Assembly (NCBI RefSeq): GCF_018977255.1
Contig: NW_024704742.1
Coordinates: 137,640,001 to 137,704,000 of the forward strand
Length of the DNA stretch: 64,000 nucleotides
From: Callorhinchus milii
Lineage: Eukaryota
Direction of reading: 5' to 3'
Made by a program: the position numbers and the translations under genes
Notes under the pieces: model-generated
What the model saw: only the letters and a program-made list of their open reading frames with translations
Told to the model about the DNA's origin: nothing
Databases searched by the model: none
Part shown: positions 9,548 through 55,100 of the stretch, in pieces
How the letters are laid out: each line of letters begins with the position of its first letter
How positions within the stretch are numbered: position 1 is the stretch's first letter

Positions 9548-9599
9548 ATGATGCTGGGAGCTGTGCTCTGTACCCTGGTCCTGTCAGCCTCGGCCTTCC
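9548..9599 (+). CDS. Gene A exon 1, signal peptide [17 protein letters not shown]
   Basis: Hydrophobic 17-mer, phase-1 donor c|GTACGT. Confidence 0.85.
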
Positions 9600-23699: not shown

Positions 23700-23751
23700 A
23701 TGATGCTGGGAGCTGTGCTCTGTACCCTGGTCCTGTCAGCCTCTGCCTTCC
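23700..23751 (+). CDS. Gene B signal-peptide exon
   Basis: Same peptide as A; c|GTACGT donor. Confidence 0.85.
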
Positions 23752-26700
23752 GTACGTACTTTCCAATCAGAAACCTGACTGGCTTTAATTACTGCTTTAC
23801 CTTTTACTGGAATAATTACAGTCATGTGATATCTCCTGCAAATAAGATTCCCGTCTCTAAACTGAACAGAACTGTGTTACTCACTGAGCCCCACAGTGTA
23901 AGTGTTTGCCTCACCCTTTGGAACTCCATCCCACAGTCCCTTCCCCTCACCCCTCTCTTGATGTCCTCCCGACATGAAAGGTGCTATACAATTTGTTGTT
24001 GTTGAATCGGTGATCTTCCCATCCTGCGCAGAATACTGTCTGTGATGAGGTGAGCAGGATACGTCCCTCTGGGGACAAAGTGCACATCTCATTCCAGACA
24101 CACAGACATTTCCAGATATAGGTGGAATTCTGAGTAGTTTGGTTTGAAGACTCTTCAGCGCAGTGATGAGTTTCCTCTGTTATCAGACACCCGGCTGACC
24201 GCAAACAAAGTGTCTGTGCTGGCGCTAGTTCTCACTGCAGCTCTGTATTCTCATCCAGTTTCTGACTGTTAAAATGTTTGCATTTTTGTAGCACGAAAAC
24301 AGCCCCTCCGCCCGTTCATTCCATTTTAAAAATTGTTATTTTCTTCACCAGCTGCCCATTCACACCCTCTGGCTCGCTCTCTCCCCCTCACCCCAAACCC
24401 TTTAATATTCCTCCTCTTCATACATCTATCCCATTCCCTTTGGTAGACTTGACAGTGGATTCCTGTAGCACTTGCCTCGCAGGCGAGAGGCATGAGCTCG
24501 ATTTCCGGCAGGTCTGAAAGTTGGGAAACTTTCCTTACTCCACTCATTTTTGCTTACCTAGCAGCAATTAGGAACCTGCTTGATCCATCGACTGGTGGAT
24601 CGCTTTTCCATGCGTAATAATTCCTTCAGAAAAAATAATAATAAATTGATCAATCAGTCTACAACTGTATGTGGGGCATCGCTGATCACAATTGGCTTCT
24701 GCTTGTTGTTCACAAAATGTACAGTCAATTCACTTTATGCAAAGCGCTTTGAGACGCCTCGAAAATGAGAAAAGGTGCTAGATCAAATGCAAGGATAATT
24801 ATTATTATTATTCTGAGTGACGGAATTTGTCTCAACTCCGTTTGTGACAGAAAATTTCACAATCCCACCTTCTCTGTGTACAGACAGGGTTTTTAACCTC
24901 CTCTCAATTTCTTTTTTTGTGATGGTTTTAGATTAATTCCTGACTGGCTGAGGAGAGGATAAATCTATTTTTGTGAATCTCTGAACCTTTGTGACCTCTA
25001 TCAGGTCACCCCTAACCTTCTCAGCCCTCGAAAAAAAAGCCCCAACCTCTCAAATCTCTTTTAGTAACTCAAAACCCTAATCCCTGAGTACATCACCAAA
25101 CTGCAACTTTATCATTGCTTTTATATCCTTCTTACTGGGGGTCCCAAAACTGTCCACAATACTCCCAGCTGTGACCTAACCAAGCTCTTGTACAAGCTCA
25201 GTGTTACCTGTTGTGTTTATATTTGTGTTCTGGTTCACATTACACCATGTCTGTCCTCACAGGGCTCAGTGAGAATAACTGGACGATGGAGACCCCCGAT
25301 ACAGTGACCGGCAGGTTAGGGTCACCGGTCACCGTGTACTGCAAGTTCACTCACCCTCACCCCAGATACACAGGGAACATCACCATCATGTGGAAGGGAG
25401 ACTGGACTGGTCCTGCGCATTTTAATTATACAAATTATGGGCCGGATTCACAGGGAAAGTATCAAAATGTTATTGATGTAAACGAGGGAGAGCGACACCG
25501 AGTGATTGGGGACCCGAGAAGGAACGACGCTACAATAAAGATAAACCAACTGAGGGGAGAGGACAATAATAAGCTGTGGTCCTGTCGTGTGGAGCTCCAG
25601 GGTGAGGACGGAAAGTTTGAAACTGGGCCCAGAACACGTCTGATTGTTACAGGTGAGGAACGATGGGAAGTGGGAATGAGACGTGACGTTCCTCACTGGG
25701 GCCGGAGTCAGTGGGAAGTGTCCCGTCCCAGGACGGGCAATAGAGAGCCAGTGTTCCCTGTGATGGACGGTGTGTAGCAGGGAGCTGACAGGTGACAGTG
25801 AGTGAGCGGCTGCAGGGAGGGAGGGCTGTGCTGTACACTGACCTGTCACTGAGCACCTGGAGGCTGAGGCGGCCTCACTGTGGGGTTGTCTATTTGCCGA
25901 GGCCCCTCACATGAGGACCTGGATTCAGAAGCTGGTGATCAGTAAGCCTGGGACGTGGCAATGGATCTCGAGAACATCAACAACAACAACAACAACAACA
26001 AGATTCCATTTATAGAGCGCCTTTCACGTCAGGAGGACGTCCCAAGGCGCTGCACAGTTGGGTCATGACCCGAGCAGGGGGGAAATGGTCAGGGTGAGGG
26101 GAGGGAAGGGAGGGAGAGAGGAGGGGGAAATGGTCAGGGTGAGGGGAGGGAAGGGAGGGAGCGAGGAGGAGGAAGAGAGTCGAGAGGGGAGCTGAAGGCT
26201 CGGTCAAAGAGAAAGGTTTTGAGACCGGCCTTGAAGGAGGAAAGGGAGGAAGCGGCGAAGGCACTGGGGGATGGAGTTCCAGAGCCTCGGGGCTGAGAGG
26301 CTGAAGGCCCGACCACCGATAGTAGGGCGGTTGGGGCGGGGGACGTGGAGCAGACCGGAGCCAGAGGAACGGAGGGTACGGGCAGGTAGGTAGGGGATAG
26401 TAGGTTGGAGAGGTAGGAGGGAGCAAGGCCGTGAATGGCCTTGTAGGTGAGGATGAGGATCTTGAAATCAATCCTCTGGGGGATGGGGAGCCAGTGGAGG
26501 CGAGCGAGGGTAGGAGTGATGTGGTCCCGAAGCCTGGTGCGGGACAGTACACGAGCTGCAGAGTTCTGAATGACCTGCAGTGTGGAGGGAGGTGCCGGGA
26601 AGGCCGGCGAGGAGAGAGTTCCCATAGTCCAGCCTTGAGGTGACAAAGGCGTGAACCAGGGTTTCAGCAGCGTGAGGGGTGAGGTAGTGCCGTAGTCTGG

Positions 26701-29700
26701 CGATATTCCGGAGGTGATGGAAGGCGGTGCCAGTTGTGGTGCGGATGTGAGGGAGAAAGGACAGCTCAGGGTCGAACAAAACGCCGAGGTTCCTGACTGG
26801 CTTTGAGAGGTGGAGAGTGCAGCCTTGGATGCTGATGGTGTCAGCGCCTGAGGTGCGGAGGCGCTGACGTGAGCCAATCAGGAGGGCCTCGGTTTTTCGC
26901 ACGTTGAGCTGAAGAAAGTTGTCTCTCGTCCAGGACTCGATGTCGGACAGGCAGCTGTCAGGACATCGGTGGTCGTGGAGTTGAGAGTAGAGGAGGAAAG
27001 GTAGAGTTGGGTGTCATCAAGGTGGCTGGCAGGTCACAAACTTCCCTGTAAGGTTCTCCCACCACAAAAAAGCCGGTGTAAAGCAGGGACTGGCTCCACA
27101 GTGACATACCAGGCCACAGGACGTCGGGCAGGAGTCAACCCTCTGTGGGGGTCTCTAGTCTGGTTCCTGAGCCAGGCGGTCGCAGTACTCCAGGGCACTG
27201 CTGATTTGGCATCAGCCTCATTGGCAGACCAGTCACTGGGCGCGACCATTCCCACTCAGCTCAATAACACCACAGATCTACACAAGCAGCAGGAAGCTTG
27301 CCACACAGTGCCGTCACTGGCCAACTGTGCTGTGGAGTCCTGTAGTGTAGTGGTTAGAGCACTCGCCTCACAAGCGAGAGGGCTTGGGTTTGATTCCCGG
27401 CAGGGAGAAAGCTTGGGCAAGTTTCCTTACTGTACAGGCCTCTGTTTACCTAGCAATGAATTGGAACATGATTGGTAGTCGATTGGTGGATCACCTCTGG
27501 GGGTAATAATCTCTCGAAAAATAATTTTAAAAATAATTTGGTCACTTAATCACCGACTGTTTGTGGGACACTGCTGGCACAATTGACTGCTGCATTTTTC
27601 CCACAAAATATACAGTCAATTCACTTTACAGTACATTCTGTGAAGCGCTTTCAGATGTCTCAACAATTTGAGATCAAATGCATGTATTATTATTTTTATT
27701 ATTATTATGATTATTATTATTATTATTATTATTACTATTATTATTATTATGCTGTTTTTGCTCCAATTTGCCCCAAACACATACTCTGGTGTCCCCAAGC
27801 CTTGCACTTGCCAACATGTGCATAATACTCTCTGAATTAGATACTCAGAGTGGATATATATGGAGTACTCACTCTCTGCTTTAGATACTCTCTACAACAG
27901 TGACAGATTTCTGTATGTATCAGGAAATCAGCTGCCCCAACACATGAGGAGGGATTTTCTCCTTGGGTTTACACCAACAATCCTCCACCTGAATTAGGTT
28001 GTTCAACAAAAATAATAACTTGTATTTATACAACACCCCTTGTACAGGGCGGCATCCCAGAGCCTTCATAACCATTGGGGTCCTTCATCTGAGTAAACTC
28101 GCTGCAAAACAGTTCCTACATTTGCCAGTAATCATGTTATTAGTGCTATAAAAAAACAGGGTTAGACTGTGAAACATTGTGCTTCCAAGAGGCTCATAGA
28201 GGGTGAGTGAGGAGCACAGGCCTGAGGGAGATGGTGCCATGAAGAGCAGGTAACATATCCAGGATTTCACAGTGTGTAACATGTACTCTGTCACACTGAC
28301 TGCTCTGCACTATTCCAATCCTGTTCCTGTCTCAGGTCATGAAGAGAAGCTCCGGTCAGTGACTGGTACCAAGGGAGGTGATGCCACACTGCCCTGCTCC
28401 TTCACCATCCCCAACACATACCAGAATCGTGCCACAGTCACAGTGCTTTGGAGGAGAGGGAGGCCACATGGGCAGCTGGTGTTTAATTACACTCTTGGCC
28501 TCGCCGACCGATCCAACTCCAGGGAGTCAGAGACAGTGAATGAAGGAAATCGCTACAAGCTGGTCAGGAATGTGGGAGATGGAGACGCTTCCCTGAAGAT
28601 CAGGGGCCTGGAGTTAAACGACAATGGACGGTATTTCTGTCACGTACACGTCATGTTTATTATGGAAGGATCCCATCAGGACCAGGTGACACAGGACATG
28701 TCACAGCTGCTGGTTGTTGGTAAGAGATCTCTTGTCTTTGTGGGACACGGAAAGGGGTGAATGAACAGGTCATCACTGACGCAATGTTACAGACGAGGTT
28801 TGTCTCATTCCTTACCCTGTTTGTCATGTGTTAATTAGCACAAGAAACATGGTATCAAAAGGCGGAGACTTTAGTTTGTTACTGGGGACAGGGTTTCTTA
28901 CCACTTGTCTCCTGTTAACCCTACAAGCTAAAGCCTAGGGTGATCCTCGCTGGACAAGCAGCGGGAAGCTTGACAATTATAAATAATGTGTTTTTGACTA
29001 GATCCAGGATTGGTCTAGATAGAAGGTTCATCTGATGTTATCCTTAAAGAACACCAGCAACAAAATCACATTTATAGAGGCCCTTTCACATCAGGAGGAT
29101 GACTGAAAGTGCTGAACGGAGCTCGAGCATGGGGAATGGGTGATGAAGGGGTGAGGGAAGATAGAAATGTGGGAGGATGACCCAAAGAGAAGGGTCTTGA
29201 GACTGGCCTTGAAAGAGGCAAGGGAGGCAGAGCATCGAGACAGTTCAGATGACACCAAGGCAGCAGAGAGGGAGCTGGGAGGGAGATTGTTTTCCAGGGG
29301 CGGTAGGAAATTGAGGTGGGATGGATTGAATGGTGGTGGGAAGAGGGATTGAGGAGTTGAATGAGATGAAGTGATGGTCCGAGATGATTTTGTCGGTGAT
29401 GGTGAGGTCCGAGATGGTGAGGCCCTGAGTGATGACCAAGACGAGAGGGTAACCGCGGAAGTGGGAGATGGAGGGGATGTGGAGGAAGAGGTTGAGGGAG
29501 GAGGTTAGGGAGGAGAAGTCAGCAGAGGTAGAGCAGGAGGGCTGAAGTGAAGGTTGAATTCCGAAGGTGCTGGGACCCAAATGGACTTGAATATTGGAAA
29601 AAGGAATTTTGAAAAGTGTTTAAAATGGAACATTGTGAACAACATGAAAATGCACAAAAAAAGAGAAGGGATTAGAGTAGAGAGCTCCAGTGGGGGAGTG

Positions 29701-32700
29701 AGCACCAGCACAGACACGATGGGGAGAGAGCAGGCAATGGGGTTAGAGTAGAGAGCTCCAGTGGGGGAGTGAGCACCAGCACAGACACGATGGGGAGAGA
29801 GCAGGGAATGGGGTTAGAGTAGAGAGCTCCAGTGGGGGAGTGAGCACCAGCACAGACACGATGGGGACAGTTGTTTGGTTTGAATATCTGTGTTTCTTTA
29901 TACCTGAAGCTCCGGCCGTCATCCTGAGTCTGTCCCTCGTGGCTGGAGGTGACATTGTGTGCACGGCTGAGGGGAAACCACCGGCCAACATCACGTGGAT
30001 CGACCCCAAGAATAACACGCTGCCCATTAACACCAGCCACACGCCAGTCACACATGTACCGGACAAGCATCAAACCGTGGGGGAGATCCGGGGCCCGAGG
30101 CTGAGGGGAACTTACCGCTGTGTAGCTGAGAACACACAGGGCAGAGACACCCGAGACATCCTCGCACCTGGACCACAGAGCAATGGTGGTCGTACTGTAT
30201 ATATCGTGGTATCCATTGTGGTGCTGCTCGTTCTGGTGACTGCCATCATTATCTGGCGGGTAAAGAGAGGTAGGTGTTTACAGACAAAGGTAATGTTTAT
30301 TCCAAGTGAGTCTGTCTCAGCCGCTCGCACTCTCACCTCTGGCTCAGCAGATTATCTGCCGCGGTTATCTCCATAACAACATTCACTTTCAATTGTAATT
30401 ACTGTATAGCGCTGCCTATCCACACACTGGGTATCCCGATCCATGCAGTGGATATATATATCCTTGTTTCCCATTATCCACATGCAACAAGAACAACAAA
30501 TTACATTTGCATTGCACCTTTCACATTCACATCTTGAAGACTGAGGTAGATAGCTATTTGTTAGGTCAAGGTATTAAGGGATATGGGGCAAGGGCAGGTA
30601 ATTGAACTTGAGGTACAGATCAGCTATGATCTTATAGAATGGCGGAACAGGCTGGAGGGGCTGAATGGCCTACTCCTGTTTCTATGTTTCACGTAGGTAG
30701 GATGGCCCAAGGGGCTGCACAGTCAGTGATCTGGACCCCAGATGGGGATTGGGATCAGGGAGTTTGGAGGCCAAAGAGAGGAGGGTGACCAAAGGTGTGG
30801 TCAAAGCGAAGGGTCAGGACATGAAGGAAGTAAGGGAGAGATCGAGGTGAAGGGACAGTGGGATGGAATTCCAAAGTATGGGGGTAAAGAGGCTGAAGGC
30901 CTGACAAATACAGAGTGAGGGAGAGCTGAGACAGCCAGAGAAGGAAAGGTAGACAGAGAGATACAGAATCACTCAGAAACCTGATAATTGTACTGTTTTA
31001 AAAATCACAAAGCAATTAATGATGTGAAGCTCAAAGCGTGAATGCAAATGTATGGTGATCTTGCTGAAATGGGCATTGGATTAAGACGGTGAAAGCCTCT
31101 GAGTACTTTCATTACCGGCACTTACACCGGCACTTCTTCAGCACACTGAGCAGTGGCCAGTGACTACCAATAGACGCAACTGGGGGTGGGATTAGAGACC
31201 ACCAGTGGGGGAGAGAGCACCAGCACAGACATAGTTGAGCTAATGGCTTCTTTGGATGGTGATATGAGCCTGGCTTCCTGCTTCAGTAACACCACACAAC
31301 AGGAAAAGGAGAGTTTGCCACAAGTCTTTCACTGGAATAAAATGTGCACGAACAAAGGTCATCAGCAAACTGTCTAAAGCAATCTCTCATCTTTCTTTGA
31401 TCTCTTCAGGTGGTGGTGTCGGACATTGCTGCCAGTGTTCACAGAGGTGAGAAATCCCTTTACTTGTATATTCACATTCAAGTTGCTAATTGCTATTGAT
31501 TGTGTGGAGAGTGGAGTGGGCTACGGAGAATGGGGTGTGGAGAATGGGGTATGGAGAGTGGAGTTGGGTGCAGAGAATGAGGTTGTGTGGAATTAGACTA
31601 CCAAGACCACCACAGAGGGTGGACTATATTCCGACATGCCATTGCCAAATTTCACCTTAGAGCCCGCTCATCCCTAAGGAGACCCTACTTACTAACCCAC
31701 CTCCCAAAAAAGTCACAAATCCCACACGCAGCTATGAGTTAAATCGTTTTCTCGGGGTTTGGACCTGCGATCACACCGGTCTCTACGTTCACCCATTCAC
31801 TGGAAAACACGTTGAGCCAAAAGAGAAGCATGCTAATAAGGGAAGTGACATCAGTGGTCTCTTTCAACAGCGTGATGTTGGTCCTTTAGTAATTATTATA
31901 ATAATCCTTGCATTTTGATATAGCGCATTATCACATCTTTGACACGTCTCAAAGCCCTTCACAGAATATACTTAAAATGAAATGACTGTATAGTATGTGG
32001 GCTAGACACAGCAGCCAATTAAGCACAGCAGTGTCCCACAAACAGTCGTGGATTGAATGACCAAATTATTTATTTATTCATTTTGAAGGGATTATTACCC
32101 CTGGAAAAGTGATCCCCCAATCAACTAGCAAACTAGCAAATATGGGGACAAAACAAAATCCAGGAAGGGACTATTATTTAAATGGTAAGAAAATACAATA
32201 CACAATACAAAATTACATTTGTATAGCACCTTTCACGTCGGGAGGATGTCCCTGAAAATAATCTGTACGGAAAATGAAAAGGACCAGGGGATCCCGATTG
32301 ACAATAAATTGAAGCTATCGCAACACTGATCAGCAAACCAGATGGTGGGTTGCATTAAAAGGGCAGTATTGAGCTGAAATAGTAGGGTAATCCTGCCACT
32401 TTATAAATCACTGGTGCAACCGCACTGGAATACTATGTGCAGTTGTAGTCACCGCAATATAAAAAGGCAATATGATTAAGGTCTTTAAGATTCTGAAAGG
32501 AATAGATATGGTAGACCATGACAAGCTCTTTTATCTTGTACTGAACAGTAGAACCAGAGGTCACGGACTGTGATTGAAGGGGGTTAAATTCAGAACAATC
32601 TGTGGAAATACTGCTTCAGTGAGCGAGCAGTAAATTTATGGAACAGACTCCTTAAGGAGACAGTGGAAGCAGAAAATGTCATTTGTTTCGAGAACGAATT

Positions 32701-35700
32701 AGATACAACTCGCATTTATATAGCGCCCTTCATGCGGGGTAATGTCCCAGAGCGCTTGGCAGTAGTGGAGTCCGACACCAAGCCAGGGGGAGAGGGAGGA
32801 AGGAATTGACCGTAAGCACGGTAGGCAAAAAGTAAAGACTTTAGGCAGGATTGAATCAAATCAAATTATTATTTCAAAAAATGTTATTCCTCAAAATCCC
32901 TCAACCCTTCCTCCTTGACCCCTCCCTCCCCACATTTTTGGGGAGGGAAAAGATTTCTGCTAGAAAATAATATCAAGCTGAATATCTCAGGGTACAATAT
33001 ATAGTTTGGGACACACAGTATCAAGGATTGCCAAGATGGTGGAAGGCGAACGGTTGTGTCACAAGGATCTTACCAATTTAACATGCACGTGCATCAGTTG
33101 TCTTATGGTTATTTGCTAATTTTCTCTACTTCCCTTTTCTCGTATACAGCCTTTCTCCAGTACTTTTCCCAAATGGCCATTGTTGATGGGTGTTTGCCAG
33201 TCAGTGTTGGTCTTCTATCCTGAAGCAAATTCTTATGTTCTTATGTAGGAGCAGTCAAAGAGGAAGGTCTTGAGATGCATCTTGAAGGAGGCCAGGAAGG
33301 GGGTGAGATGGAGGGGCTCCAGGATGGAGTTCCAGAGGGTGGTGACAGAAAGGCCTGAAGGCTGAAGGCCTGACTACCGATAGTGAAGCGGGCAGGGCAG
33401 GGGAAATGGAGCAAGTCAGTGCCTGCCAAGCAGAGTGAACAGCCAGGTTTTTAACCTTTCAGTGGGTCGCAGAGGTAGGGAGGAGTAAGACCATGCAGGA
33501 CTATCTACGTACATAGTGTAAAATCATTAGAGTTATGGAAAGTTAGTCAGAAATTCCACCAAATTAATACAGCAACCACTTTGATCCTCCACCTTGAGAT
33601 ATTCTGCTGCCCCTCAACTGACTGCTCGTTTTTTCCCTTTTATATTTTCCTGCCATTGACAATTATCTAGCCAACAATGAATCAACAATAACTGATCACT
33701 AATCCTCTCTGAAACAGCCTGAGGTCGAGTCCCCACAAGATTCAGCGCCTCGGCACGTCCTCCTGACGTGAAATACGCTGTAAAAATATAATTTCTTATT
33801 GTTGTTGATCTCAGCCTCAGTAAAGATGAGCCTGTGTGTCACTTAGAACCAGAAATTTTACAGTACAAGGAGACCATTCATCAGCCTATCATGTCCGCAG
33901 GAAAAGCTCTCTGTTTAGTGCCATTCTCCTGCCTCATATTCACATGTAGGGTTGACTACACAGCAGTCACTCACTGACTGGCAAACACCCATCAACAATG
34001 GCCATTTGAGAAAAGTACTGGGGAAAGGCTGTATGCGAGAAAAGGGAAGTAGAGAAAATTAGCAAATAACCATAAGACATGTGATGCATGTTCATGTTAA
34101 ATTTAGCATTTACTAAATTTAATAAGTGGTGTTGGTAAGATCCTTGTGACACAACCGTTGTTTGCGTCATTTACTGGTAAGATACTTGTGACACAACCTT
34201 TGTTTGCGGAACCTTGCACAATGAAATGATCAGTTGCACATTTCTTATCAACTTTTCTTTCATTTCCCCAATCTTTTATCCAACTGAATCTGAAGCCAAT
34301 TGAAGCCTCGTGCTGTCCCCAGCTGAGATCACTAACCTATCAGTCGCTTGGGATTGGAATTTACCAATCTGGTTTGTTGTACGCTCACTGGTCACTGGAT
34401 AAACTCACTGAACCAGCACAGAATGTCTAATAATAGGTGATTGGTAAATCCTGTGGTTTTCTTTCATTGGATACACTCAGTTCCCTATGAGGAGAAAGAA
34501 GTTCCCTATGATGAGACGTCTCAAAGCGTTTCACAGAATATGCTGTGAAGTGAGTTGACTGTATATTCTGTGGGTGAAAGAGAGGAACATATATTCACAA
34601 ACCTGGATTCTACGCAATATCTTCCAGCAACCATCATCCCAAACCATTTCATCCTAAAGCCTTTGTTTAGGCATACAATGATTCTGGAGGGAGAGGAACT
34701 GGGGGAGGGTTTTTTGTCTCTTGTGGTTGAGCTGCTCCAACACGAGTTGAGCTGTTCAGCTCACCCTAACAGATTCGAACAGGGATGACCAATACAGTCA
34801 TGTAATAATCCAAGGTTTATTCATTAATACAAATAGCTTAACTTATTCTTAAAACTGAGACAATAAATACAATAGAATCGATATTGATTCCACTGGAAAA
34901 TGTGCTGACCCTCTACACAATTCCAACTATCTCAAAGTTGTATCTTTCTTTTATGTGTTTCTAACTCCACCTCCACTTCTCCTCAAATGGCTTCTCCTCT
35001 AGACCCCAGACCAGCTTGTGTGGCATTGGTCAGCATGTCGACTGAGAAACTCACTGCTTGTCAGCCTCCCCAACTCCTCCCTCCATGGCTGCAGATCACC
35101 CCCATCCTTGCCCAAGTCCACTGGCTTCCCATCACACAGAGGATACAGTTCAAGATCCTGGTCCTCACCTTCAAAGCCCTCCATGTTTTTGCTACCCCCT
35201 ACCTCTCCGACATCCTAACCCCCTACCACCCTGTTCACTTCGTCTGCTCAGCGGCGACGGCCTGCTTCACGTCCCCCGCCTTACTCATACCACTATCAGT
35301 GGGCGGGCCTTCCGCCACTCTGCACACACTCTCTGGAACTCCATCCCGCAGTCCCCCTGTTTCGCCCCTCCCTCGCTACCTTCAAGACCCACCTCAAGAC
35401 CCTCCTCTTGACCGTGCTGTCGATCTCCCTTCTTCTCCCCGCCCTCCCCCCTCCCCCACCTTGACCCCCAGCTTGGATCTGAAACTCTTCTATCCCGCGC
35501 CTTGGGACGTCCTCCCTATGTGAAAGGCGCTATACAAAGGTAATTTTGTTGTTGTTGTTGTCACAGAGATAGCCCCCTCCCTGCGCAGGCGGGTAGCAAA
35601 ACTTGAGCTGCTTGAGCTCCTTATAACTGATAAGGAGAAAGAGAAATGCACAGTTAATTGGGAGGATTCCTGTTTTTCAGTCTTGAGCAAATCAGATTTC

Positions 35701-36553
35701 CAGGAGTAGGCTTCTCTCTGCGACCCCCTTGTTTTCACACCTGTGCTCAAGGACATGATTACTCAACTCTTAGATGGGAGGATGGCAATGGGTCTCAGGC
35801 ACCGAGCCAGGGAAAAGTTACCAGAACCTGATCTCAGCCGGGGTCAAGCCAATATATCTTTTCCTTTGCTAACACTAATTGGCACATGTAACCTCTCAGG
35901 GGCCCTAAGTTAGTCTTTTAAAAGCACCCAGCCTTGCCTATCTATGCCCTAGTAGCTAAGGAATCCCAAAATAACTGACTCTCTGATCAGCGAAATAATC
36001 GCTCACTGTTTATCCTATCGTGCCCCTTTCTGATCTTGAAACTCAATCTGGCCACCGCTTAACCCTCTCAGCTCCTGTGAAAATGCCCAACCTCCCATGC
36101 CATCAACCATAGAAACAGAATGGGAGCCCAAAACTGTATGCAAAGTTTGTGACCCATTAACATTCTCAGACCCAATGCCTCAAGAGTCCCTTCATAACCG
36201 ACCCTCTGCTCTGTGGTCATATCCTAGTGAACAACAACAAAATTACATTTGTGTAACGCTTTTCACGCCGGGAGGACGTCCCAGTGAATCCATTTGCTTT
36301 CAGCCACTTTGCCCCACTCTCTAAAACTCTCACCTAAAACCAACCTCTCCACCTCGCTTTCTACCTTGAAAACCCGGTTCTTTGATGGTTCCATCGATTG
36401 TGACTGCGCGGTCTCCCACACACTTCCGACTCCTGCTCCTTCTCTGTGAAGTGATTAGAGAAGATCCCTGACATGAAAGACGCTATATAAGTGCAAGTTC
36501 CTGTTCTTGAATCTCCACCACACCTGGTCTGTGCCTTTTATATCCTTCCTTCC

Positions 36554-36631
<78 letters not shown>

Positions 36632-39569
36632 CTGAAATGCATTCCCAGAACTGCACACAAGGCTGTGGCCTAGCTGAGGCTTGGACCCTTCAGAGAAGAT
36701 GGTTTCTCCCAGTGTCCTGGCCATCAATCCCCTAATAAACTTAATCATACTTCATGATTATTTATGAGGAAGTTGCAGTGTGCACATTGGCTGGTGAATT
36801 TTACACTAAATCCTGTGAAGTGCTATAATAAGTCCTCCTGATGTGAAAGACACAGTATCAAATGTAAGGATTATTATATATAAGGTTTTATCTCCCATCC
36901 TCTATGAAATGTACACTATAAAAAGTTTTCTCTCTTTCTTTAGTCATCAAATGGATTTGGATGTTAACAACGACATGGTCCAACCTCAGCCGCCTGCAGG
37001 AGACGGTAACTGTTCTGTCTCGATTAGAGATTCCACAATTTTCAACCCGTGCTTTCAATAACCTGTCGCTGGGTCTCAGCCGAGCTCAGTCAGTGACCCT
37101 CTCATCTCTGGCTCTGGGTGTCTGACACACACAAAAAACCATCACCGTGCTTAAGACCATCCAGAGCAGAGCATCCACGTATGTCACTTAGCAGGAGCCA
37201 AATGGGAAGAATCCCTATTAACAGTGACTGGTCTGCCTTTCCAAGCCCTGCCAATGAGCCTGGCTGACTGGGCTGTCATCAGCACGGCCACAGATTACTG
37301 CAGACTTGCCTGGCTCAGGAACCCTGCGAGGGTATATTGGCACATGTACCCTCTCAGAGGCCCAAAGTGAGTCATTTAAAAACACCCAGCCTTGTCCATC
37401 TATGCCCTAATGGCTAAGGAATGCTATGCTAAATGGTCTGGAGACTGCCACAGAGGGTGGATTTGATTCAGTTGCCAATACATCTCTGGTCAGTGCCAGC
37501 TTGAAAGGCACTATATATGTTTGTTGTTGTCACTTTATAGCCAGCTCAAGCCCAAAGAGACTCTGCCTCTGCCTCAGAATGTAAGAGTTTTGGGCTGTTT
37601 GATGAGGCAGTTTATGGTTTATCCAGGCCCAATTATTGTTTTGAGACTTTTTAACATTATATTTGGAAAAGAAAAATCTGAGAGTCAATGGGAAAAGGGG
37701 CAACAGCCAAATGGCCTCCAACTCGGTATAAATATTCTGATTGTATAAACAACAACAAATTACATTTGTATAGTGTCTTTCATGTCAGGAGAACGTCTCA
37801 AAGTGCTGGATAATCAGGGATCCGCACTCGAGTTGGCATCAGGAGGGGTGGAGGGTGGGGATGGTTAGTGGGGTGACTGAAGACACCATCGAATAGAAGA
37901 GTCTTGAGATGGGCTTGAAGGGAGGGGGCGAGGTGGAGTGACTGTGGGATGGAGTTCTAGAGGGTGGGGGCGAAGAAGCTGAAGGCCCACCCACCAATGG
38001 TGGGGCGAGCAAGGTGGGTGACGTGAAGCAGGTCGGAACCCACTGATCGAGGTAGCAGTCAGGTTGGAAAGGGCTTAGGAGATCACAGAGCTTGTGAAGA
38101 GCGAGGCCGTGGAGGGCTTTGAAGGTCAGGATCCTCTGAGTGATGTGGCAAAGGGGAAACTGGAGAAGGAGCTGACTGTTGTGTCTCTGACAGACGTAGC
38201 TGCTGTGATCTACAGTGTGGTTACCCCAGCACCGGCCCGGCAAACAGATTCAGGTAAGAAATGTATCACACAGGGACGGAGCCGGCATTGGCTCGCACCT
38301 CAGCCGACAGGGATCTGCCTTCCCTCTCCTGTCCAGGGTTAACTGTCAGCCTGGCTCAGTTGGCAATACTCTCAACAAAACGGTTGTGGTTTCAAGCCCC
38401 ACATCGGATCTTTCCATTCACGTAATCCATTCTGACACTTGTCTGCCTGTTCAGGTGGACATTAAAGACCCCATGGCAATGTTTGATCCCGGAGGAACTT
38501 CAAGTTGGAGCAGGAGGAGGGCATTCAGCCCAACAGCCTGCTCCACCAGTTTATTGGATCATGACAGATCTTTCAATCCCTGACTTTTCTCCATGCCCCT
38601 TCATCCCCTTCCTGTCCAAGTCTTTATCCGTCAATACCTTTTAAACCACGATTCATTCCACTTCTGAAGAGCATCGCATACTCTCACCACACTCAGTATG
38701 AGAAATATTACACCAAGGTGAGGACACATATACAGTACATATAAAACCAGTGTCATATTTCCTTTGTGAAGTTGATTCCCATTTCTGATGGAAATGTTAT
38801 CAATATTGAAATTATTTACTAATAACTGTCTCTCTCTCTCTCCTTCCCAAGTGTACGCAAATTCCGCCAGAGCCAGAGCCTCTGATGACAGTGAGTATTG
38901 TCAGCCTTTTCTGGTTTATTGTGTATCCAGTCGCCTCGCTGCTCGCACTCTGGGTCAGGAGGTTGGGGATTCGAGCCCCTAAATCAGGGACCTCGAGGTC
39001 ACAGTCCAGGCTGATGCTCCAGTGCAGTACTGGGAGGAGCGTTACATTATCAGAAGCGCTGTCCTTTGATTGAGGTCTGTGTCTATTGAGGGTTTTTTGG
39101 CCATGTGTAGAAACCCATCACCGTTCTCAAGAGTATCCAAACCAGACTGGGAATTCCACATCTATGTCACCTGTACATGGAAATTTCCCTGTGTCTGGAA
39201 TGGACTGGAATCCTTCTGTTGGAAAAGAGAAGGGAATTTCTCTCTCCTGGTGTTCTGGCCAACAATGCTCCAAATATAATTGGTCACTCACTTCTTGGCT
39301 GTTTGGACATTGCTGAATGCAAATCGGCTGCCAGGTTTGCTGATAAAATACACAGTCACTGCACTTGACAGTGATTTGCTTGGAGACATTTGGACCTTAG
39401 AGACGTTATATTAAATGTGCAAGTTCTTATAAACTTTAACCTGGGTCACACTTTATATCGGAGCTCTCAGCAAGTGGCGGGACATGTCCTGACTCCATTT
39501 TGTTTTTTTTTTCCAGATGTGATTTATGCTGTTGTCGCCAACTCGAAGGGGAGATCAGCTGAGCAGTGA
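23700..39569 (+). CDS. SIGLEC15-like: Gene B: Siglec-15-like inhibitory-type receptor, 478 aa, 9 coding exons, two ITIMs
   Basis: Exons sum to 1437 nt with consistent phases (1,1,1,1,2,1,1,1); every exon mirrored in gene C. Confidence 0.82.
25263..25652 (+). CDS. Gene B V1 exon (Arg codon 25586-25588)
   Basis: 390 bp, phase 1-1, WSCRVE. Confidence 0.9.
25981..27014 (-). mobile_element. Young 5'-truncated L2 insertion in gene B intron 2, TSD CATCAA
   Basis: catcaa at 25975-25980 and 27015-27020; empty site gaacatcaaggtgg in A and C. Confidence 0.9.
28336..28719 (+). CDS. Gene B V2 exon
   Basis: 384 bp, phase 1-1. Confidence 0.9.
29910..30269 (+). CDS. Gene B C2 and uncharged TM exon ([25 protein letters not shown])
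   Basis: 360 bp; g|GTAGGT donor. Confidence 0.87.
31410..31446 (+). CDS. Gene B cytoplasmic exon 1 ([12 protein letters not shown])
   Basis: tctcttcAG / ag|GTGAGA, phase 1-2; paralog 55888-55924. Confidence 0.75.
34990..35562 (+). mobile_element. L2 3' fragment
   Basis: [21 protein letters not shown]; tail gtgaaaggcgctat..(ttg)n. Confidence 0.75.
36557..36629. repeat. (TTA)n microsatellite
   Basis: About 24 perfect units. Confidence 0.95.
36944..37005 (+). CDS. Gene B cytoplasmic exon 2 (SHQMDLDVNNDMVQPQPPAGD)
   Basis: tttctttAG / g|GTAACT, phase 2-1; paralog 52113-52174. Confidence 0.75.
38194..38253 (+). CDS. Gene B cytoplasmic exon 3 with ITIM VIYSVV
   Basis: ctgac..tctctgacAG / g|GTAAGA; paralog 50884-50943. 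Confidence 0.8.
38852..38890 (+). CDS. Gene B cytoplasmic exon 4 (VYANSARARASDD), YxN motif
   Basis: (tc)n ccttcccaAG / a|GTGAGT; paralog 49826-49861. Confidence 0.8.
39517..39569 (+). CDS. Gene B last coding exon with ITIM VIYAVV ([17 protein letters not shown])
   Basis: ttttttccAG acceptor, TGA at 39567-39569; paralog 49136-49188. Confidence 0.82.
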
Positions 39570-49135: not shown

Positions 49136-49188
49136 TCACTGCTCAGCTGATCTCCCCTTCGAGTTGGCAACAACAGCATAAATCACAT
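49136..49188 (-). CDS. Gene C last coding exon, ITIM VIYAVV
   Basis: Identical peptide to B. Confidence 0.82.
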
Positions 49189-52100
49189 CTGGAAGAGAAA
49201 CAAAATGGTGTCAGGACATGTCCCACCACTTGCTGAGAGCTCTGATATAACGTGTGACCCACGTTAAAGTCTATAAGAACTCTCACCTTTACTATAACGA
49301 CTCTAATACCAAATGTCTCAAAGCAAATCGCTGTCAAGTGTAGTGACTGTGTATTTTATCAGCAAACCTGGCGGCTAATTTGAATTCAACAATGTCCACA
49401 TACAGCCAAGAAATGGGGGATCAATTTTATTTGGAGAATTGTTGGCCCGGACACCAGGAGAGAGAAATTCCCTTCCCTTTTCCAACAGCACATTGCATTC
49501 CAGACACAGGGAAATTTCCATGTGGAGGTGACATATATATGTGGAATTCTCATTCTGGTTTGGATACTCTTGAGAAGGTGATGTTGGTTGACCCAAAAAA
49601 CCTCAATAGATACAGACGGGATCTTGGTTTAACATCGCAATTAAAGGACAGCACTTCTGACAATGTAGCGCTCCTCCCAGTACTGCACTGGAGCATCAGC
49701 CTGGACTGTGAGCTCGAGGGCCCTGATTTAGGGGCTCGAATCCCCAACCTCCTGACCCAGAGCCAGAGTGCGAGCAGCGAGGCGACTGGATACACAATAA
49801 ACCAGAAAAGGCTGACAATACTCACTGTCATCAGAGGCTCTGATGGTGGAATTTGCGTACACTTGGGAAGGAGAGAGAGACAATTATTAGTAAATAATTT
49901 CAATATTGATAATATTTCCATCAGAAATGGGAATCAACATCACAAAGAAAATATGACACTGGTTATTAAACAGAGTATACATAGAAATCCGGAGAGGGGG
50001 GTTCAATGTCTAAAGCTCAGTCCCCAAAGCTGGGACAGGATTCAATTGGTGCTACTCTAATGCAAGTGATTTGGACTTGATACTACTCTAATATCAGGGC
50101 CTGGGGATTGGTGAGCACCAACCACAGGGTTAGGACTTAGGTGAATGTAGCAGCCAATTTGCACCAAGCTCCATAACCCCATATAATAATAATAATCCTT
50201 GCATTTGATATAGCGCTTTTCACGTCGGGAGGACGTCCCAAAGCGCTTCACAGAACACACTGTAAAGTGAATTGACTGTATATTTGTGGGCGAACGCGGC
50301 AGCCAATTGCGCACAGCAATGTCCCACAAACAGTCGTAGATTGAAAATGACCATTATTATTATTGTTTTTTTTTGGAGGGATTATTATTAGGCTCTGTGT
50401 GGAGTAAGGAAACTTGCCCAAGGTTTTGCCCTCTGCCTGGAATTGAACTCAGGTCTCTCACTTGCAAAGCGAGTGCTCTAACCACTGAGCTACAGGACTC
50501 CACACTCATCCCCACACTCCATTGCCTTGCTCCCTCCTACATCCCTGACCTGCTAAGCCCCTATCAACCTGTCTGCTCCCTCCATTCAGCAGGCTCCGGC
50601 CTACTTCATGCTCCCACCTTACCTACCCTACAATCGGCGGCCAGGCTTTCAGCCTCTCTGACCCACCCTTTGGAACTCCATCGCACAATCCCTTAGCCTC
50701 CCTTGCCTCCTCAATGCCCTCCTTTACGTCCATGCCTTCAGCCGTCCTCCTACCTCTCTGCCCTCCCTCACCCCAACCCTGCTCCCCTCTCGCTCGGGTC
50801 CTGATCCACGGCTATTCAGCACCTTGGGACATCCTCCCGACGTGAAAGGTGCTTTACAAATGTAATTTCTTGTTGTTTCTTACCTGAATCTGTTTGCCGG
50901 GCCGGTGCTGGGGTAACCACACTGTAGATCACAGCAGCTGCGTCTGTCAGATACATAACAGTCAGCTCCTTCTCCAGGTCTCTGCAGCTTCCCCTTTGCC
51001 ACATTCTACCTCGTCCTGTCCCCATTTTCCTGATACACCAGCCACTTCCACTCCCTCAAGATACAGGTGAGTGCTATTGAAAGCACCGGGCTCAAATCTA
51101 ATTAATGGTCCACTGGCAGATCTGCCTCGACAACATCAAAACAGCTCCATCCTCACCTCCACTAATTCATCCTTCTACTCCAAGATAATCTTGGAGGCAA
51201 GCACAACCCAAGGCTCCTCTTCTCCATGGGTTGAGGGTTGTCCCCTCCCCATCTCCGCAACATTGCTCAACTCTGCCACGGCCTCAGCCCTCAGGCTGCC
51301 GAAATCCTCATTCACACATTAATGACATTAGACTCGACTATCGCAACTCCCTGCTTGTCGGACTTGCCAAATTTTCCCTCCATAAGCTGCAGATTATTCA
51401 GGCCCTTTGACTGTGAGGCTCTGAAAGGCTCTCCCTTTAGCCCCACTCCCCTTTTCCCATTGGCTTTCAGATTTTTCTTTTCTAAATATTATTGGTGACT
51501 TGGCAGGTGTATTTTGCCAACTCCCAGATCCTGGGAATAGCTGTGAGATGAGGGACCAATTTATCCAGGGATTGTCATCCAGGACATTGGAAGGAACTCC
51601 CTTCCTTTTTCTGATAGTGTCACGGGATCTTTAACATCCCGATGGGCACAAGGATTCTTTCCACTCAGCTCCTGTTGGGTGACAGACATATGGCACTCTC
51701 TGGGAGGATGGTCCCAGCTGGACAAGCAGCAGGAAGCTTATTATCTAATGCTTTCAATGGCAAGCTATGTGGTTTCAGCTGGTTATACTCCAGCAGTTAT
51801 CTCGATGACTTGGTTCTCGCTACTGTGAACTGAAAACTTTCTGAAATGAGGTAAGCAGGATGAGTCTCTCCGTGGAGACAGACAGAGTGAGCCATTCCAT
51901 ATATGGAAATTTCCACGTGTAGGTGATTTACATGGGTGGAATTCTCAGTCTGGTTTGGATGCTCTGAAGCACAGTGATGGGTTTCTCTGTGTGAAGACAC
52001 CCAGAGCCAGAGGTGAGATGGTCACTGACTGAGCTCGGCTGAGACCCAGTGACCGGTTATTGAAAGCACGGGGTCAAAATTGTGGCATCGCTAATTGAGA

Positions 52101-55100
52101 CAGAACAGTTACCGTCTCCTGCAGGCGGCTGAGGTCGGACCATTTCGTTGCTAACACCCACATCCATTTGATGACTGAAAAAAAGAGAAAACGTTTTATA
52201 TTGTACATTTTATAGAGGTTAGAAGATAAAACCTTATATATAATAATTTGATACAGTGTCTTTCACATCAGGAGGATGTCTTATAGCACTTCACAGTGTA
52301 GGATTCAGTAAATAATGTTTTATTCTATCCTAAAGAAGGAATACAAGACTACGATTTAAACAACTTTGAACGTACAATAATAGCTGAATATTTTGGGGTG
52401 AATCTCTCAGCCTGGACTGACTGGGACTATCAGATTGTCCCCTCTACCTAAGCTCGCTGACACCCCCACCGTCTCGGTGTGCGCATTTTGGCTACCGCCT
52501 CCACCCAAGCTTCTCCATAATGCTCCTAACCCTGTCCTCTGCCCTCCACTATTCCCCCTCGATCCTCCTGTCTCACCGGCCTCCCCGACTCCTATTCCTG
52601 CTCGACCGTCCCACAGCCTCCCTCTGCTCCAGTCTGCGAAACCTCCATCGGCCTACCGCAGAAGATGTTGCTTCCTGTCCAAGAGCAGCCTCTCTGACTG
52701 CCCTGTTCTCCATTCTCGCCACAAGGCTCACCGGTCCCTGACCATGGGGACCAACATCTCCTCCCTGATCCCATCCCCACTGTACGTGTTAGTCATCAAC
52801 CACCCTTTGAGCACCTTACCATTTATCACCACTCCAACCATGCCCTCAAAATTCTCCTAATCTAGTGCCCCCAAGCCCTTCCCCAATTTCATCACTGACA
52901 TCTCTACCCTCCTATCTTCTCTGCCCCTCTGCTCCGAACTCCTCCTCATCCTAGGTGGCTTCAACTTTCATTTCACTCCCTCCTGCTCATCTGAACTCCT
53001 TCCCCTCTGGGCTTCCTTCCACCATGACATATCCTCCTCGATCACTCTTCTCCACAGCTCCCTCTCCTCTACTCTCGATTCCACTCTCTTCGCAAACCAT
53101 CTCCTATCCATATAAGTCAGCATGGTACACCAGCCACCACCGCTCCCTTAAAGCACAGTTGCGTGCCGCTGAGCACACATGGCTTAAATCAAACTTAACG
53201 ATCCATCGGGACATCTGGCTGGACCATATCAAATCCTACTGCTCCGCCCTCGCCTCCGCTAAATCGTTGTTCTACTCCTAGACAATCTTGGAGGCTAAGG
53301 ACAACCCCAGGCTCCCCTTCTCCATCATGAACTACTCCTCCACCACCATCTCACGCCTTGCTCATCCTCAGCTTAAATGCCAACCTCTAGGCGATGCTAC
53401 AATTCCTGGAATCCAAAGTCAAGGGAATCTGCTCAGTTGCCTATGCCATTCCATTTGCTACCCCCTTGAGATCAACATCGCCCACCCCGGCCCTTACGTA
53501 TCCCCCCCTCCACACCTTCAAACCTGTCTCCCCCTCCTCTCTCATCACCATTATAACCAGCATGAAACCGACTACCTTCTCCCTCGACCCCACTCCTACC
53601 CCTCTCCTTACCTCCCAGCTCCATCTCCTTGCCCCTCTACTCATTGACATCATGAATCTCTCCCTGTCCTCTGATAGTGTTCCCACATCATTAAAAACCG
53701 CCGTCATCACTCCAATCCTTAACAAACTCTCCCTGGACCCATCTCTAATCCCAAATTACCGCCCCGTTCCCAAATATCCTTTCCTCTCCAAGGTCCTGGA
53801 ACGAGTTGCTTCTCAGCCTCACTCCTTCCTCTCCTCCACTGCCTTCATGAACCCCTCCAATGGGGTTTCCCTGCTGCCCACAGCACAGAAACAGCCCTGG
53901 CCAAAGTGACAAATGACATTCTGTCCATCTGCGAACAGGGCTTCCTTTGCTTCCTTATTGACATCTCTCACAGTTGACCATTCTATCCTCATCCCACTTC
54001 AATCTTCACAGCTCTGTCCTTCACTGGTTCAGATCGTACCTCTCACACCACCACCACTTTATATCCACAAACGGTTCCTCCTCTAGCCCCCGCACGGTCT
54101 CGTGCGGTGTTCCTCAGGGCTCTGTCCTTGGTCCCCTCCTCTTCAATATCTATATGCTCCCTCTTGGTGACATCATCCGGAGACATGGGGTCAACTTTCA
54201 CATGAATGCGGATGATGCCCAACTCTACCTTTCTACCCTTAACTCCAGGACCCACTGCTGTCCTGACAGAATGACTGTCGGATATCAAGTCCTGGATGAG
54301 AGTTAACTTTCTTCAGTTGAACGTCAAAAAGACTGAGACTTTCTTGATTCACTCCCGTCAGCGCCTCCTCACCTCAACCAAAAACATCACCATCCATGGT
54401 TTCATACTCCAGTCACACTCCAGCTTGCTAAGCCAGTCCGAAACCTTGGCATCTTGTTTGATCCTCAACTACCCTTTCTACCCCACATTTGTACTATGAC
54501 CCGTTCTGCCTTCCCCACCCCTGTAACATCGTCCGGCTCTGCCACTGTTTTACACCGTAGGCCGCAGAAACCCTCATACATGCTTTATTACATCGAGTCT
54601 CGACTATGCAAACTCCTTGCTTGTCGGCCTTCCCAACTCTTCCCTCCATACGCTGCAGATCATCCAGAACTCTGCAGCCAACATCCTCTCCCACACTAGG
54701 CTCTGCGACCCTATCAACCCCATCTCGCCCGACTCCACTGGCTTCCTATCCCACAGAGCATACAGTTCAAGATCCTGGTTCTCACCTTCATGGACTTGCT
54801 CCATGGACTTGCTCCCCCCTACTTCTGTAACCTACCATTATGCTCGTCCCCACCGCTTAGCTGGCTCAAGCCTGCTTCATGTCCCCTGCCTCGTTCGCCT
54901 CACTATTGACGGTTGAGCCTTCTGCCACTCTGTCCGCACGCTCTGGAACTCCTTCCCTGCTTCATCCCGTGCCCTACACACTCCCCGACCTCGACCCCTA
55001 GCTTGGGTCCAAAACTCTTCTGTCCAGAGCCTTGGGACGTTCTCCCAACATGAAAGGCGCTTTATAGATGTAATTTTGTTGTTTTTGTTGGGTGATACCG

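Follow-up and report, generated by a model that had tools for sequence, protein, structure and literature searches.

Siglec-15 is of interest as a drug target, both in bone disease and in cancer. Its transmembrane (TM) segment bears a lysine that couples it to DAP10/DAP12, it has no ITIM, and it has been described as a purely activating receptor that has kept this character from fish to mammals (PMC7226832). [quoted passage not shown] In the paired CD33-related Siglecs (Siglec-5/14, Siglec-11/16) and in PILR alpha/beta, near-identical ectodomains, homogenised within lineages, are found on either an ITIM tail or a DAP12-type charged TM segment. [quoted passage not shown]

The window analysed here, a 64,000-nucleotide stretch of Callorhinchus milii DNA, is a Siglec-15-like cluster. 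The window contains three genes, A, B and C, whose V and C2 exons share 88-97% DNA identity. Exon-by-exon assembly of gene B (plus strand) gives an intact, open model of nine exons and 478 amino acids, with GT-AG sites throughout and consistent phases, in the order leader, V1, V2, C2 plus TM, tail; all protein models cited here are computational predictions. Exon 1 (23700-23751) runs from the ATG to a GT donor (phase 0 to 1) and encodes the signal peptide, matching RefSeq residues 1-18 at 100% identity. Exon 2 (25263-25652; Pfam V-set) encodes V1, a Siglec-15-type V-set with the ligand arginine in the sequence WSCRVE. Exon 3 (28336-28719) encodes V2, a second V-set (Pfam V-set, E 4.5e-15) with a histidine at the arginine position. 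Exon 4 (29910-30269; Pfam Ig_3/Ig_2/I-set) encodes a C2-type Ig domain, a short stalk and an uncharged TM helix, free of K, R, D and E. It ends with ...WRVKR in phase 1 (donor AGAG/gtaggt) and is 100% identical to residues 536-656 of XP_042192088.1.

The best PDB sequence match of V1 is human Siglec-15 (7zoz; E 2.3e-14 over 127 residues), followed by CD33, and the arginine of WSCRVE aligns on that of YFCRVE in Siglec-15. V2 also finds Siglec-15 as its best PDB match (E 1.1e-9). With the solved V-set of Siglec-15, a protein of human, mouse and teleost, V1 has in common a THPH...Y motif, a GDPRRND strand and the CRVE ligand arginine, and the resemblance extends to the C2-type domain followed by a single TM segment. 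An N-terminal V-set with the arginine conserved on strand F, by which Siglecs bind sialic acid, is found in both B and C, and several family members are named 'sialic acid-binding Ig-like lectin 15' in RefSeq. At the level of sequence, the assignment of a Siglec-15-type ectodomain, made in the original prediction, is settled. Orthology is another matter. Siglec-15 has one V domain, whereas B and C have V1, V2 and C2, and they combine an uncharged TM segment with an ITIM-YxN-ITIM tail. Thus, both marks of a Siglec-15 orthologue (a TM lysine without ITIM; one V plus one C2 domain) are missing from B and C. A single-V protein under the name Siglec-15 (P0051) exists separately in sharks, which makes B and C paralogues and not the Siglec-15 orthologue.

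The cytoplasmic tail, 85 amino acids in B and 84 in C, is encoded by five short exons. The original prediction had proposed the last three of these in gene B; they held up, each acceptor having a polypyrimidine tract and AG, with GT donors following. Exon 7 (38194-38253; gacag/ACGTAG to TTCAG/gtaaga, phase 1 to 1) carries the first ITIM, VIYSVV. Exon 8 (38852-38890; cccaag/TGTACG to GACA/gtgagt, phase 1 to 1) carries a candidate Grb2 site of the pYxN type, VYAN (VYANS...). Exon 9 (39517-39569; ttccag/ATGTGA to CAGTGA) carries the second ITIM, N-VIYAVV, followed by ten more residues and the stop codon. All three exons are entered in phase 1 and are therefore read in frame through to the stop, giving the layout VIYSVV - 15 aa - VYAN - 15 aa - VIYAVV - 10 aa - stop. 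The earlier assembly had missed two small linker exons between the TM exon and this tail. Exon 5 (31410-31446, phase 1 to 2) encodes a Cys-rich juxtamembrane segment and exon 6 (36944-37005, phase 2 to 1) an acidic, proline-containing spacer (...PQPPAGD), which brings the phase back to 1 for the ITIM exon. Both have canonical splice sites; exon 5 is read in the RefSeq frame and exon 6 is present in the RefSeq models. A different splice model, with an AAG/gtaatg donor at 30289, segment 31410-31446 in phase 0 and without 36944-37005, is also open to the stop. It was rejected because the RefSeq frame differs, because ray homologues have a Cys-Cys pair at the position where the RefSeq frame places one, and because a tgc/tgt difference between genes B and C is synonymous only in that frame. 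The juxtamembrane CCxC sequence is a likely candidate for palmitoylation, and disorder is the expected state of the tail.

Each of the three tail tyrosines falls within a recognised motif. As had been claimed, VIYSVV and VIYAVV, on separate exons, both satisfy the ITIM consensus [I/V/L/S]-x-Y-x-x-[L/V/I], as quoted in PMC7226832, and they do so in B and in C alike. In the six-frame translation of the window this consensus occurs 0.0015 times per residue; therefore, 0.12 occurrences are expected in an 85-residue tail. Two are observed, more than chance accounts for. The VYAN sequence of B and C, a tyrosine with asparagine at +2, fits the Grb2-binding pYxN pattern, in line with the proposed motif assignment. 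An ITAM reading of the same tyrosines was considered and rejected: the middle motif is YANS, and YSVV and YAVV have valine, not leucine or isoleucine, at +3. It is also disfavoured by the location of the tail on an uncharged TM segment, opposite a lysine-bearing partner.

The tail is identical, residue for residue, in three RefSeq proteins (XP_042192088.1, XP_042192095.1 and XP_007907099.1), the tail-bearing models being labelled "uncharacterized protein LOC103188797". It is thus already in public gene predictions, yet it is undescribed in the literature searched: queries for Siglec-15/Siglec or ITIM/DAP12 with elephant shark, sharks, cartilaginous fish or Callorhinchus returned no description of the B/C family. 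The current RefSeq model is probably chimeric, joining the leader, V1 and V2 of gene A, whose V2 donor lies at about 16101, to the C2-TM exon and tail of gene B. Taken at face value, this model would mean that the tail exons are real but are spliced in vivo to the gene A ectodomain, the leader, V1 and V2 of gene B being skipped or unused, so that one ectodomain could receive either an activating or an inhibitory TM segment and tail. Isoforms X1 and X2 of LOC103188797 are indeed 100% identical first to the gene A V1 copies and V2, then to the gene B C2-TM exon and tail. We nevertheless find this arrangement improbable, since the leader, V1 and V2 of gene B are intact with good splice sites, and the older XP_007907099.1 starts at the end of the gene B V2 exon (MSQLLVV) and continues into the same tail. 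Single-gene V1-V2-C2-TM-tail models also exist in Heptranchias and Narcine, and read mapping among paralogues of ~90% identity readily yields chimeric models. A gene B with its own ectodomain is the model retained below, and users of the annotation should treat the current RefSeq entry for the locus as a probable fusion of two adjacent genes.

Gene C, on the minus strand and convergent with B, gives an equivalent intact model of 607 amino acids; like B, it encodes a type I membrane protein. An open exon of 250 codons (57343-58092) encodes its C2 domain, a stalk of (DGDRQS)n repeats and the same uncharged TM segment; it is followed by a Cys-rich juxtamembrane exon (55888-55924), a spacer exon (52113-52174), the first ITIM exon (VIYSVV; 50884-50943), the YxN exon (VYAN; 49826-49861), 3 nt shorter than its counterpart in B, and the second ITIM exon with the stop codon (VIYAVV; 49136-49188). 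Both ITIM hexamers are the same in B and C, as originally noted, and the remainder of the tail exons differs slightly. The first ITIM exon shows one substitution in 60 positions (DVAAV in B, DAAAV in C) between flanks that cannot be aligned, the second one synonymous difference in 53, and the YxN exon a 3-nt in-frame indel together with substitutions. The divergence of the ITIM exons (1.7-1.9%) compares with 10-57% in the flanking 120 nt; the ITIM exons are under purifying selection. The spacer exon diverges between B and C at the neutral rate.

Searching the database with the tail alone (P0153, region 520-608) brought up just one C. milii paralogue, the query being too short for the size of the database. 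Direct comparison with elasmobranch homologues revealed a collinear layout, with IYSxV in proximal position, then a YxN and, close to the terminus, IYAxV, in sixgill, horn shark, manta, skate and electric-ray proteins. The sequence IYS[IV]V lies ~35-42 residues past the TM segment in Heptranchias, Heterodontus, Mobula, Rhinoraja, Narcine and Leucoraja, and most of these tails also have a YxN (LYSN[AV], VYEN) and a near-terminal IYA[TAV]V. The distance of this last motif to the C-terminus is 9-16 residues in 8 of 10 homologue tails, a set that counts two isoforms of one Heptranchias gene and to which genes B and C are additional. Collinear BLASTP matches between tails were obtained for chimaera against sixgill shark (E 5e-5) and against electric ray (E 0.04). 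The gene B YxN exon aligns with VYEN...RASEDN of Heptranchias and with LYSN of rays. YxN is present in Heptranchias, Mobula, Rhinoraja and Narcine and absent from two C. milii paralogues, from Leucoraja and from Heterodontus (Y-to-H). In Pristis, the tail of P0168 is truncated and shows a Y-to-H change.

These comparisons bear on the suggestion that the tail exons are decaying or unused and that the expressed products are tail-less decoy receptors, made by intron read-through after the TM exon. The UniProt/Ensembl-type models A0A4W3HWK2 and A0A4W3I0M8 do read through the TM-exon donor at 30269 and end (MFIPSES...) without the tail, and the Pristis protein could be taken in the same sense. In both B and C, however, none of the five tail exons is disrupted, the ITIM exons are far better conserved than their flanks, and the layout is kept in the elasmobranch homologues examined, so that we give this suggestion very little credence.

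The pattern of conservation raises a different question for the tail as a functional unit. The residue at -2, which defines an ITIM, is not conserved: it is mostly proline in the proximal motif of elasmobranchs, and alanine, cysteine or glutamate in the terminal motif of four species. The conserved element may therefore be a looser pY-x-x-V SH2 ligand or a YxxPhi sorting signal. The tyrosine motifs might, then, serve mainly as AP-2 endocytosis or sorting signals, making B and C constitutively internalising, clearance-type sialoglycan receptors that do not recruit phosphatases. YSVV and YAVV both fit YxxPhi, the core shared across species is IY[SA]x[VI], with -2 drifting among P, A, C and E, and the flanking tyrosines are anywhere from 17 to 51 residues apart, depending on the species. 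Against this, both motifs are canonical ITIMs in four C. milii paralogues, the conserved YxN between them plays no part in AP-2 sorting, and the matched lysine-TM arm of the family is typical of signalling pairs. A predominantly sorting role thus seems unlikely, even though sorting and inhibitory roles of these motifs are not mutually exclusive.

The activating partner is gene A, in which an ORF (17246-17737, plus strand) contains a C2 and TM exon with a transmembrane lysine. Its C2 domain is the same as that of gene B and the two diverge past the stalk. Gene A has the TM lysine, as do the ~400-aa forms in every species, but B and C lack it. An ectodomain tree follows lineage rather than signalling type, with the two types mixed within each lineage: 6 changes are required where shuffling gives a mean of 6.8-6.9. 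Such a pattern is the signature of paired receptors. In the reading that we favour, and consider probable, B and C form the inhibitory side of a family of paired activating/inhibitory receptors; the family, present across the cartilaginous fishes, has a Siglec-15-type ectodomain, and its inhibitory members would recruit SHP-1/2 and Grb2. Splicing in vivo, phosphorylation, SHP and Grb2 binding and the inhibitory outcome are here what we infer from the gene models and motifs. When engaged beside an activating receptor, such a protein would have its three tail tyrosines phosphorylated by a Src-family kinase. The two ITIMs are predicted to recruit SHP-1/2, and the central pY-A-N to engage the SH2 domain of Grb2, in the manner of CD22 and Siglec-10/G. 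ITAM signalling would be damped as a result, including that from gene A, whose lysine-TM product is presumably DAP12-coupled and has a near-identical ectodomain.

The tail grammar is that of Siglec-10/Siglec-G and CD22, and VYEN is found at the homologous position in Heptranchias. The resemblance is one of motif grammar, the tails not being linked here by sequence homology. Moreover, Siglec-10 and CD22 have ectodomains of other kinds, built of 5 and 7 Ig domains and with V-sets of the CD33 or CD22 type, and the CD22 tail has six tyrosines. G6B-b provides another parallel: 26 residues beyond its ITIM comes a C-terminal pY motif whose core, IYAVV, is the same. It departs from B and C by a threonine at -2 (making an ITSM), by a lone V-type domain whose ligand is heparan sulfate, and by the lack of a YxN between its motifs. 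Since the gene is unrelated, the analogy is one of mechanism only. With its motifs 15 residues apart, the C. milii tail offers a compact natural three-tyrosine system for studying combined SHP and Grb2 recruitment.

The CD33-related Siglec and PILR pairings are primate- or mammal-specific and recent, whereas the pair described here is ancient, because chimaeras, sharks and rays share its two arms, the one with the TM lysine and the one with ITIMs. On the motif evidence, the Siglec-15-type domain would also be used for inhibitory signalling, by a conserved ITIM-Grb2-ITIM tail, and activating/inhibitory pairing of Siglec-type receptors would go back to early jawed vertebrates. It is conceivable, though we advance it only tentatively, that the Siglec-15 lineage itself began as an ancient pair with a CD22/Siglec-10-like ITIM/Grb2-site/ITIM arm, retained by chimaeras, sharks and rays from before their divergence, with the ectodomains of both arms continually homogenised, and that bony vertebrates retained only the DAP12-coupled activating arm. 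If so, the status of mammalian Siglec-15 as an 'orphan activating receptor' would result from secondary loss.

The similarity of the two ITIMs had also been put down to a possible exon duplication. Local DNA alignment of the two exons gave no support for this, matching just the 18-nt motif, and 197 of 2000 shuffles scored as high. If there was such a duplication, it happened before chimaeras and elasmobranchs separated, since the IYSxV and IYAxV motif types are each conserved on their own.

Self-comparison of the 64-kb window, which contains no runs of N, delineated three paralogous genes: A (about 9.5-18.8 kb, plus strand), B (23.7-39.6 kb, plus strand) and C (63.4-49.1 kb, minus strand), with B and C convergent, tail to tail. 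The proteins that match the window with 100% identity belong to Callorhinchus milii, the elephant shark, and come from RefSeq and UniProt. The three tail exons of gene B lie exactly where the original prediction placed them, an assignment confirmed by their splice sites and common phase. All are on the plus strand and entered in phase 1: ITIM 1 (VIYSVV; 38194-38253, acceptor ...gacag, donor ...TTCAG/gtaaga), YxN (VYAN; 38852-38890, acceptor ...cccaag, donor ...GACA/gtgagt) and ITIM 2 (VIYAVV, then ten residues and a TGA stop; 39517-39569, preceded by a T-rich tract and ccag). Their gene C counterparts are at 50943-50884, 49861-49826 and 49188-49136 (minus strand). Both ITIMs had been described as identical in B and C, and this holds for the two hexamers; the remaining exon sequence differs in places, with a single Val/Ala change in the first exon, an in-frame 3-nt deletion plus substitutions in the middle exon, and one synonymous difference in the last. 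The suggested duplication of the ITIM 1 and ITIM 2 exons was not borne out at the DNA level: their similarity does not reach significance and extends no further than the 18-nt motif. The introns on both sides of the YxN exon contain tRNA-derived SINE-like elements (38270-38420 and 38920-39060, plus strand) with box-B-like sequences (ggttcaagcccc and gattcgagcccc), and immediately 5' of the ITIM 1 exon, at about 37750-38130, the sequence matches a dispersed repeat present elsewhere in the window.

The original prediction did not include the way in which the tail joins the transmembrane (TM) exon. Gene B's C2-TM exon (29910-30269) ends with ...WRVKR in phase 1 (donor AGAG/gtaggt). Two additional small exons were found downstream on the plus strand, a Cys-rich exon (31410-31446, phase 1 to 2) and a spacer exon ending ...PQPPAGD (36944-37005, phase 2 to 1); both have canonical splice sites and are kept in B and C, and through them the ITIM 1 exon is entered in phase 1. 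With the leader, V1 and V2 exons (23700-23751, 25263-25652 and 28336-28719, plus strand), gene B is assembled as an intact gene of 9 exons and 478 aa. The equivalent gene C model encodes 607 aa, its C2-TM exon including a stalk made of an 18-bp (DGDRQS)n repeat. This stalk (57430-57815, minus strand), wholly missing from gene B, comprises about 21 in-frame units of DGDRQS and variants, with regularly spaced Cys in three of them (DGDRHC). A second in-frame splice model for the gene B tail was rejected: RefSeq uses the other frame, whose Cys-Cys pair recurs in rays and in which alone the tgc/tgt difference between B and C is synonymous.

When the window is translated in all six frames, the ITIM consensus has a frequency of 0.0015 per residue, giving 0.12 expected hits in the 85-residue tail against the 2 observed. 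The ITIM exons of B and C diverge by 1.7% and 1.9%, whereas their 120-nt flanks are 10-57% diverged or unalignable and the two spacer exons match the introns in their rate of divergence (8-11%), so that selection is specific to the motif exons.

With the C2-TM exon as query, a full HMMER search and subsequent cluster look-up retrieved three RefSeq proteins carrying exactly the assembled tail at their C-termini: XP_042192088.1 (738 aa) and XP_042192095.1 (608 aa), both "uncharacterized protein LOC103188797", and an older model, XP_007907099.1 (210 aa). The tail is thus already present in public predictions, though unnamed; RefSeq lists the sequence as an uncharacterized protein. The first part of LOC103188797 isoforms X1/X2 (738 and 608 aa) is 100% identical to the gene A leader, V1 copies and V2, and the second part to the gene B C2-TM exon and tail; they leave out the lysine-TM exon of gene A and, from gene B, the leader, V1 and V2, joining 9548-16124 to 29910-39569. 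These models are probably chimeras of two adjacent, about 90% identical paralogues, or else the products of real cross-gene splicing, a reading with which it fits poorly that the 210-aa model begins inside the end of the V2 exon of gene B itself and that other species have single-gene models of V1-V2-C2-TM-tail architecture. In UniProt entries A0A4W3HWK2 and A0A4W3I0M8, the reading frame continues past the 30269 donor and the tail is absent. Such UniProt/Ensembl-type models end after about 35 intron-coded residues (30270-30376, plus strand; 57342-57239, minus strand), in a segment 98% identical between B and C; if real, the read-through would yield a tail-less isoform.

A sixgill-shark homologue used as query returned 39 proteins, all chondrichthyan, which fall into two classes. 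One comprises proteins about 400 aa long, whose lysine TM (CLIPL[IV]KFLLLL) is strongly conserved and whose tail runs to some 8-13 residues; in the other, longer proteins couple an uncharged TM with a tail rich in tyrosine. These long tails follow a common layout: IYS[IV][VI] 35-42 residues past the TM; variable repeats, usually with YxN (LYSN[AV] in rays, VYEN in Heptranchias, VYAN in C. milii); and, 9-16 residues before the C-terminus, IYA[TAV]V with a K/Q-rich end behind it. In BLASTP, the three tyrosines are collinear between elephant shark and Heptranchias, including VYxN...RASxDN (E 5e-5), and between elephant shark and Narcine (E 0.04). Across species, the residue at -2 that defines a strict ITIM is not kept, being mostly Pro in the proximal motif of elasmobranchs and Ala, Cys or Glu in the terminal motif of four species, so that C. 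milii and Heterodontus show the canonical ITIM most clearly. In two C. milii paralogues outside the window, LOC103188796 (P0001, XP_042187952.1) and LOC103188801 (P0162), a second ITIM1-type exon replaces the YxN exon, placing ITIM1-type exons in tandem; the second copy in LOC103188801 has Tyr changed to Cys (VICSVV). Heptranchias isoform X3 carries a related unit twice, plus a third copy with Tyr changed to His. Within one motif type, these symmetric phase-1 exons do duplicate. A 434-aa Pristis pectinata protein (P0168), an uncharged-TM member with a truncated tail and proximal motif IHNVV (Tyr to His), is apparently a decayed inhibitory form.

The gene A C2-TM exon encodes the same C2 domain and, past the stalk, diverges into a lysine-bearing TM. 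A maximum-likelihood tree was built from the V2+C2 region of 11 activating and 9 inhibitory family members, 20 in all, each represented by the same 235-residue stretch upstream of the TM, or by 184 residues in the case of the shorter Heterodontus model. The tree, which may include chimeric public models and has two inhibitory rows on long branches, clusters by lineage (chimaera, sharks, batoids), with both signalling types mixed within each. The signalling label changes 6 times, in effect no fewer than with shuffled labels (mean 6.8-6.9). Unlike the lineage-grouped ectodomains, the TM and tail modules are recognisable in all lineages. The pattern is that of paired receptors in which gene conversion or repeated duplication homogenises the ectodomains.

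Judging from its motifs, the tail most likely works as a standard inhibitory module. Its tyrosines would be phosphorylated by Src-family kinases, SHP-1/2 would then be recruited, and the central pYAN would engage Grb2. Precedents for the Grb2 part are Siglec-G/10, which combines an ITIM, an ITIM-like motif and a Grb2 site, and CD22, whose YENV binds Grb2 beside ITIM/SHP-1 (PMC6286995). For the paired-motif SHP-1/2 part the precedent is G6B-b, in which a C-terminal TIYAVV follows the ITIM by 26 residues and, upon double phosphorylation, SHP-1/2's tandem SH2 domains are bound as one unit (PMC3501490). The main functional rival takes the IY[SA]xV cores, which are conserved, as YxxPhi endocytic signals, a role compatible with the inhibitory reading. 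Genes B and C are classed here as putative ITIM-bearing, paired, Siglec-type receptors. The literature searched contains no description of this Siglec-15-like chondrichthyan family or its tail.

Pfam assigns V-set to V1 and V2 and Ig_3/Ig_2/I-set to the third domain. The best solved-structure match of V1 is human Siglec-15 (7zoz, E 2.3e-14, 127 residues aligned), ahead of CD33, and its WSCRVE aligns on Siglec-15 YFCRVE, the sialic-acid arginine position. V2 also matches Siglec-15 best (E 1.1e-9), with His in place of the arginine. The description of the ectodomain as Siglec-15-type is therefore fair. B and C themselves, however, are not Siglec-15 orthologues, because they have two V domains and ITIMs and lack the TM lysine found in Siglec-15, and because sharks have a separate single-V protein bearing that name. 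If the tail is inhibitory, a Siglec-15-type domain would have, in cartilaginous fishes, an inhibitory partner of ancient origin. Siglec-15 itself has been described as purely activating, its TM lysine kept from fish to mammals (PMC7226832). The 323-aa, single-V Carcharodon 'Siglec-15' (P0051, XP_041041398.1) has LDYSEV, a match to the ITIM consensus, in its cytoplasmic part, so even the true Siglec-15 lineage may be not purely activating in sharks.
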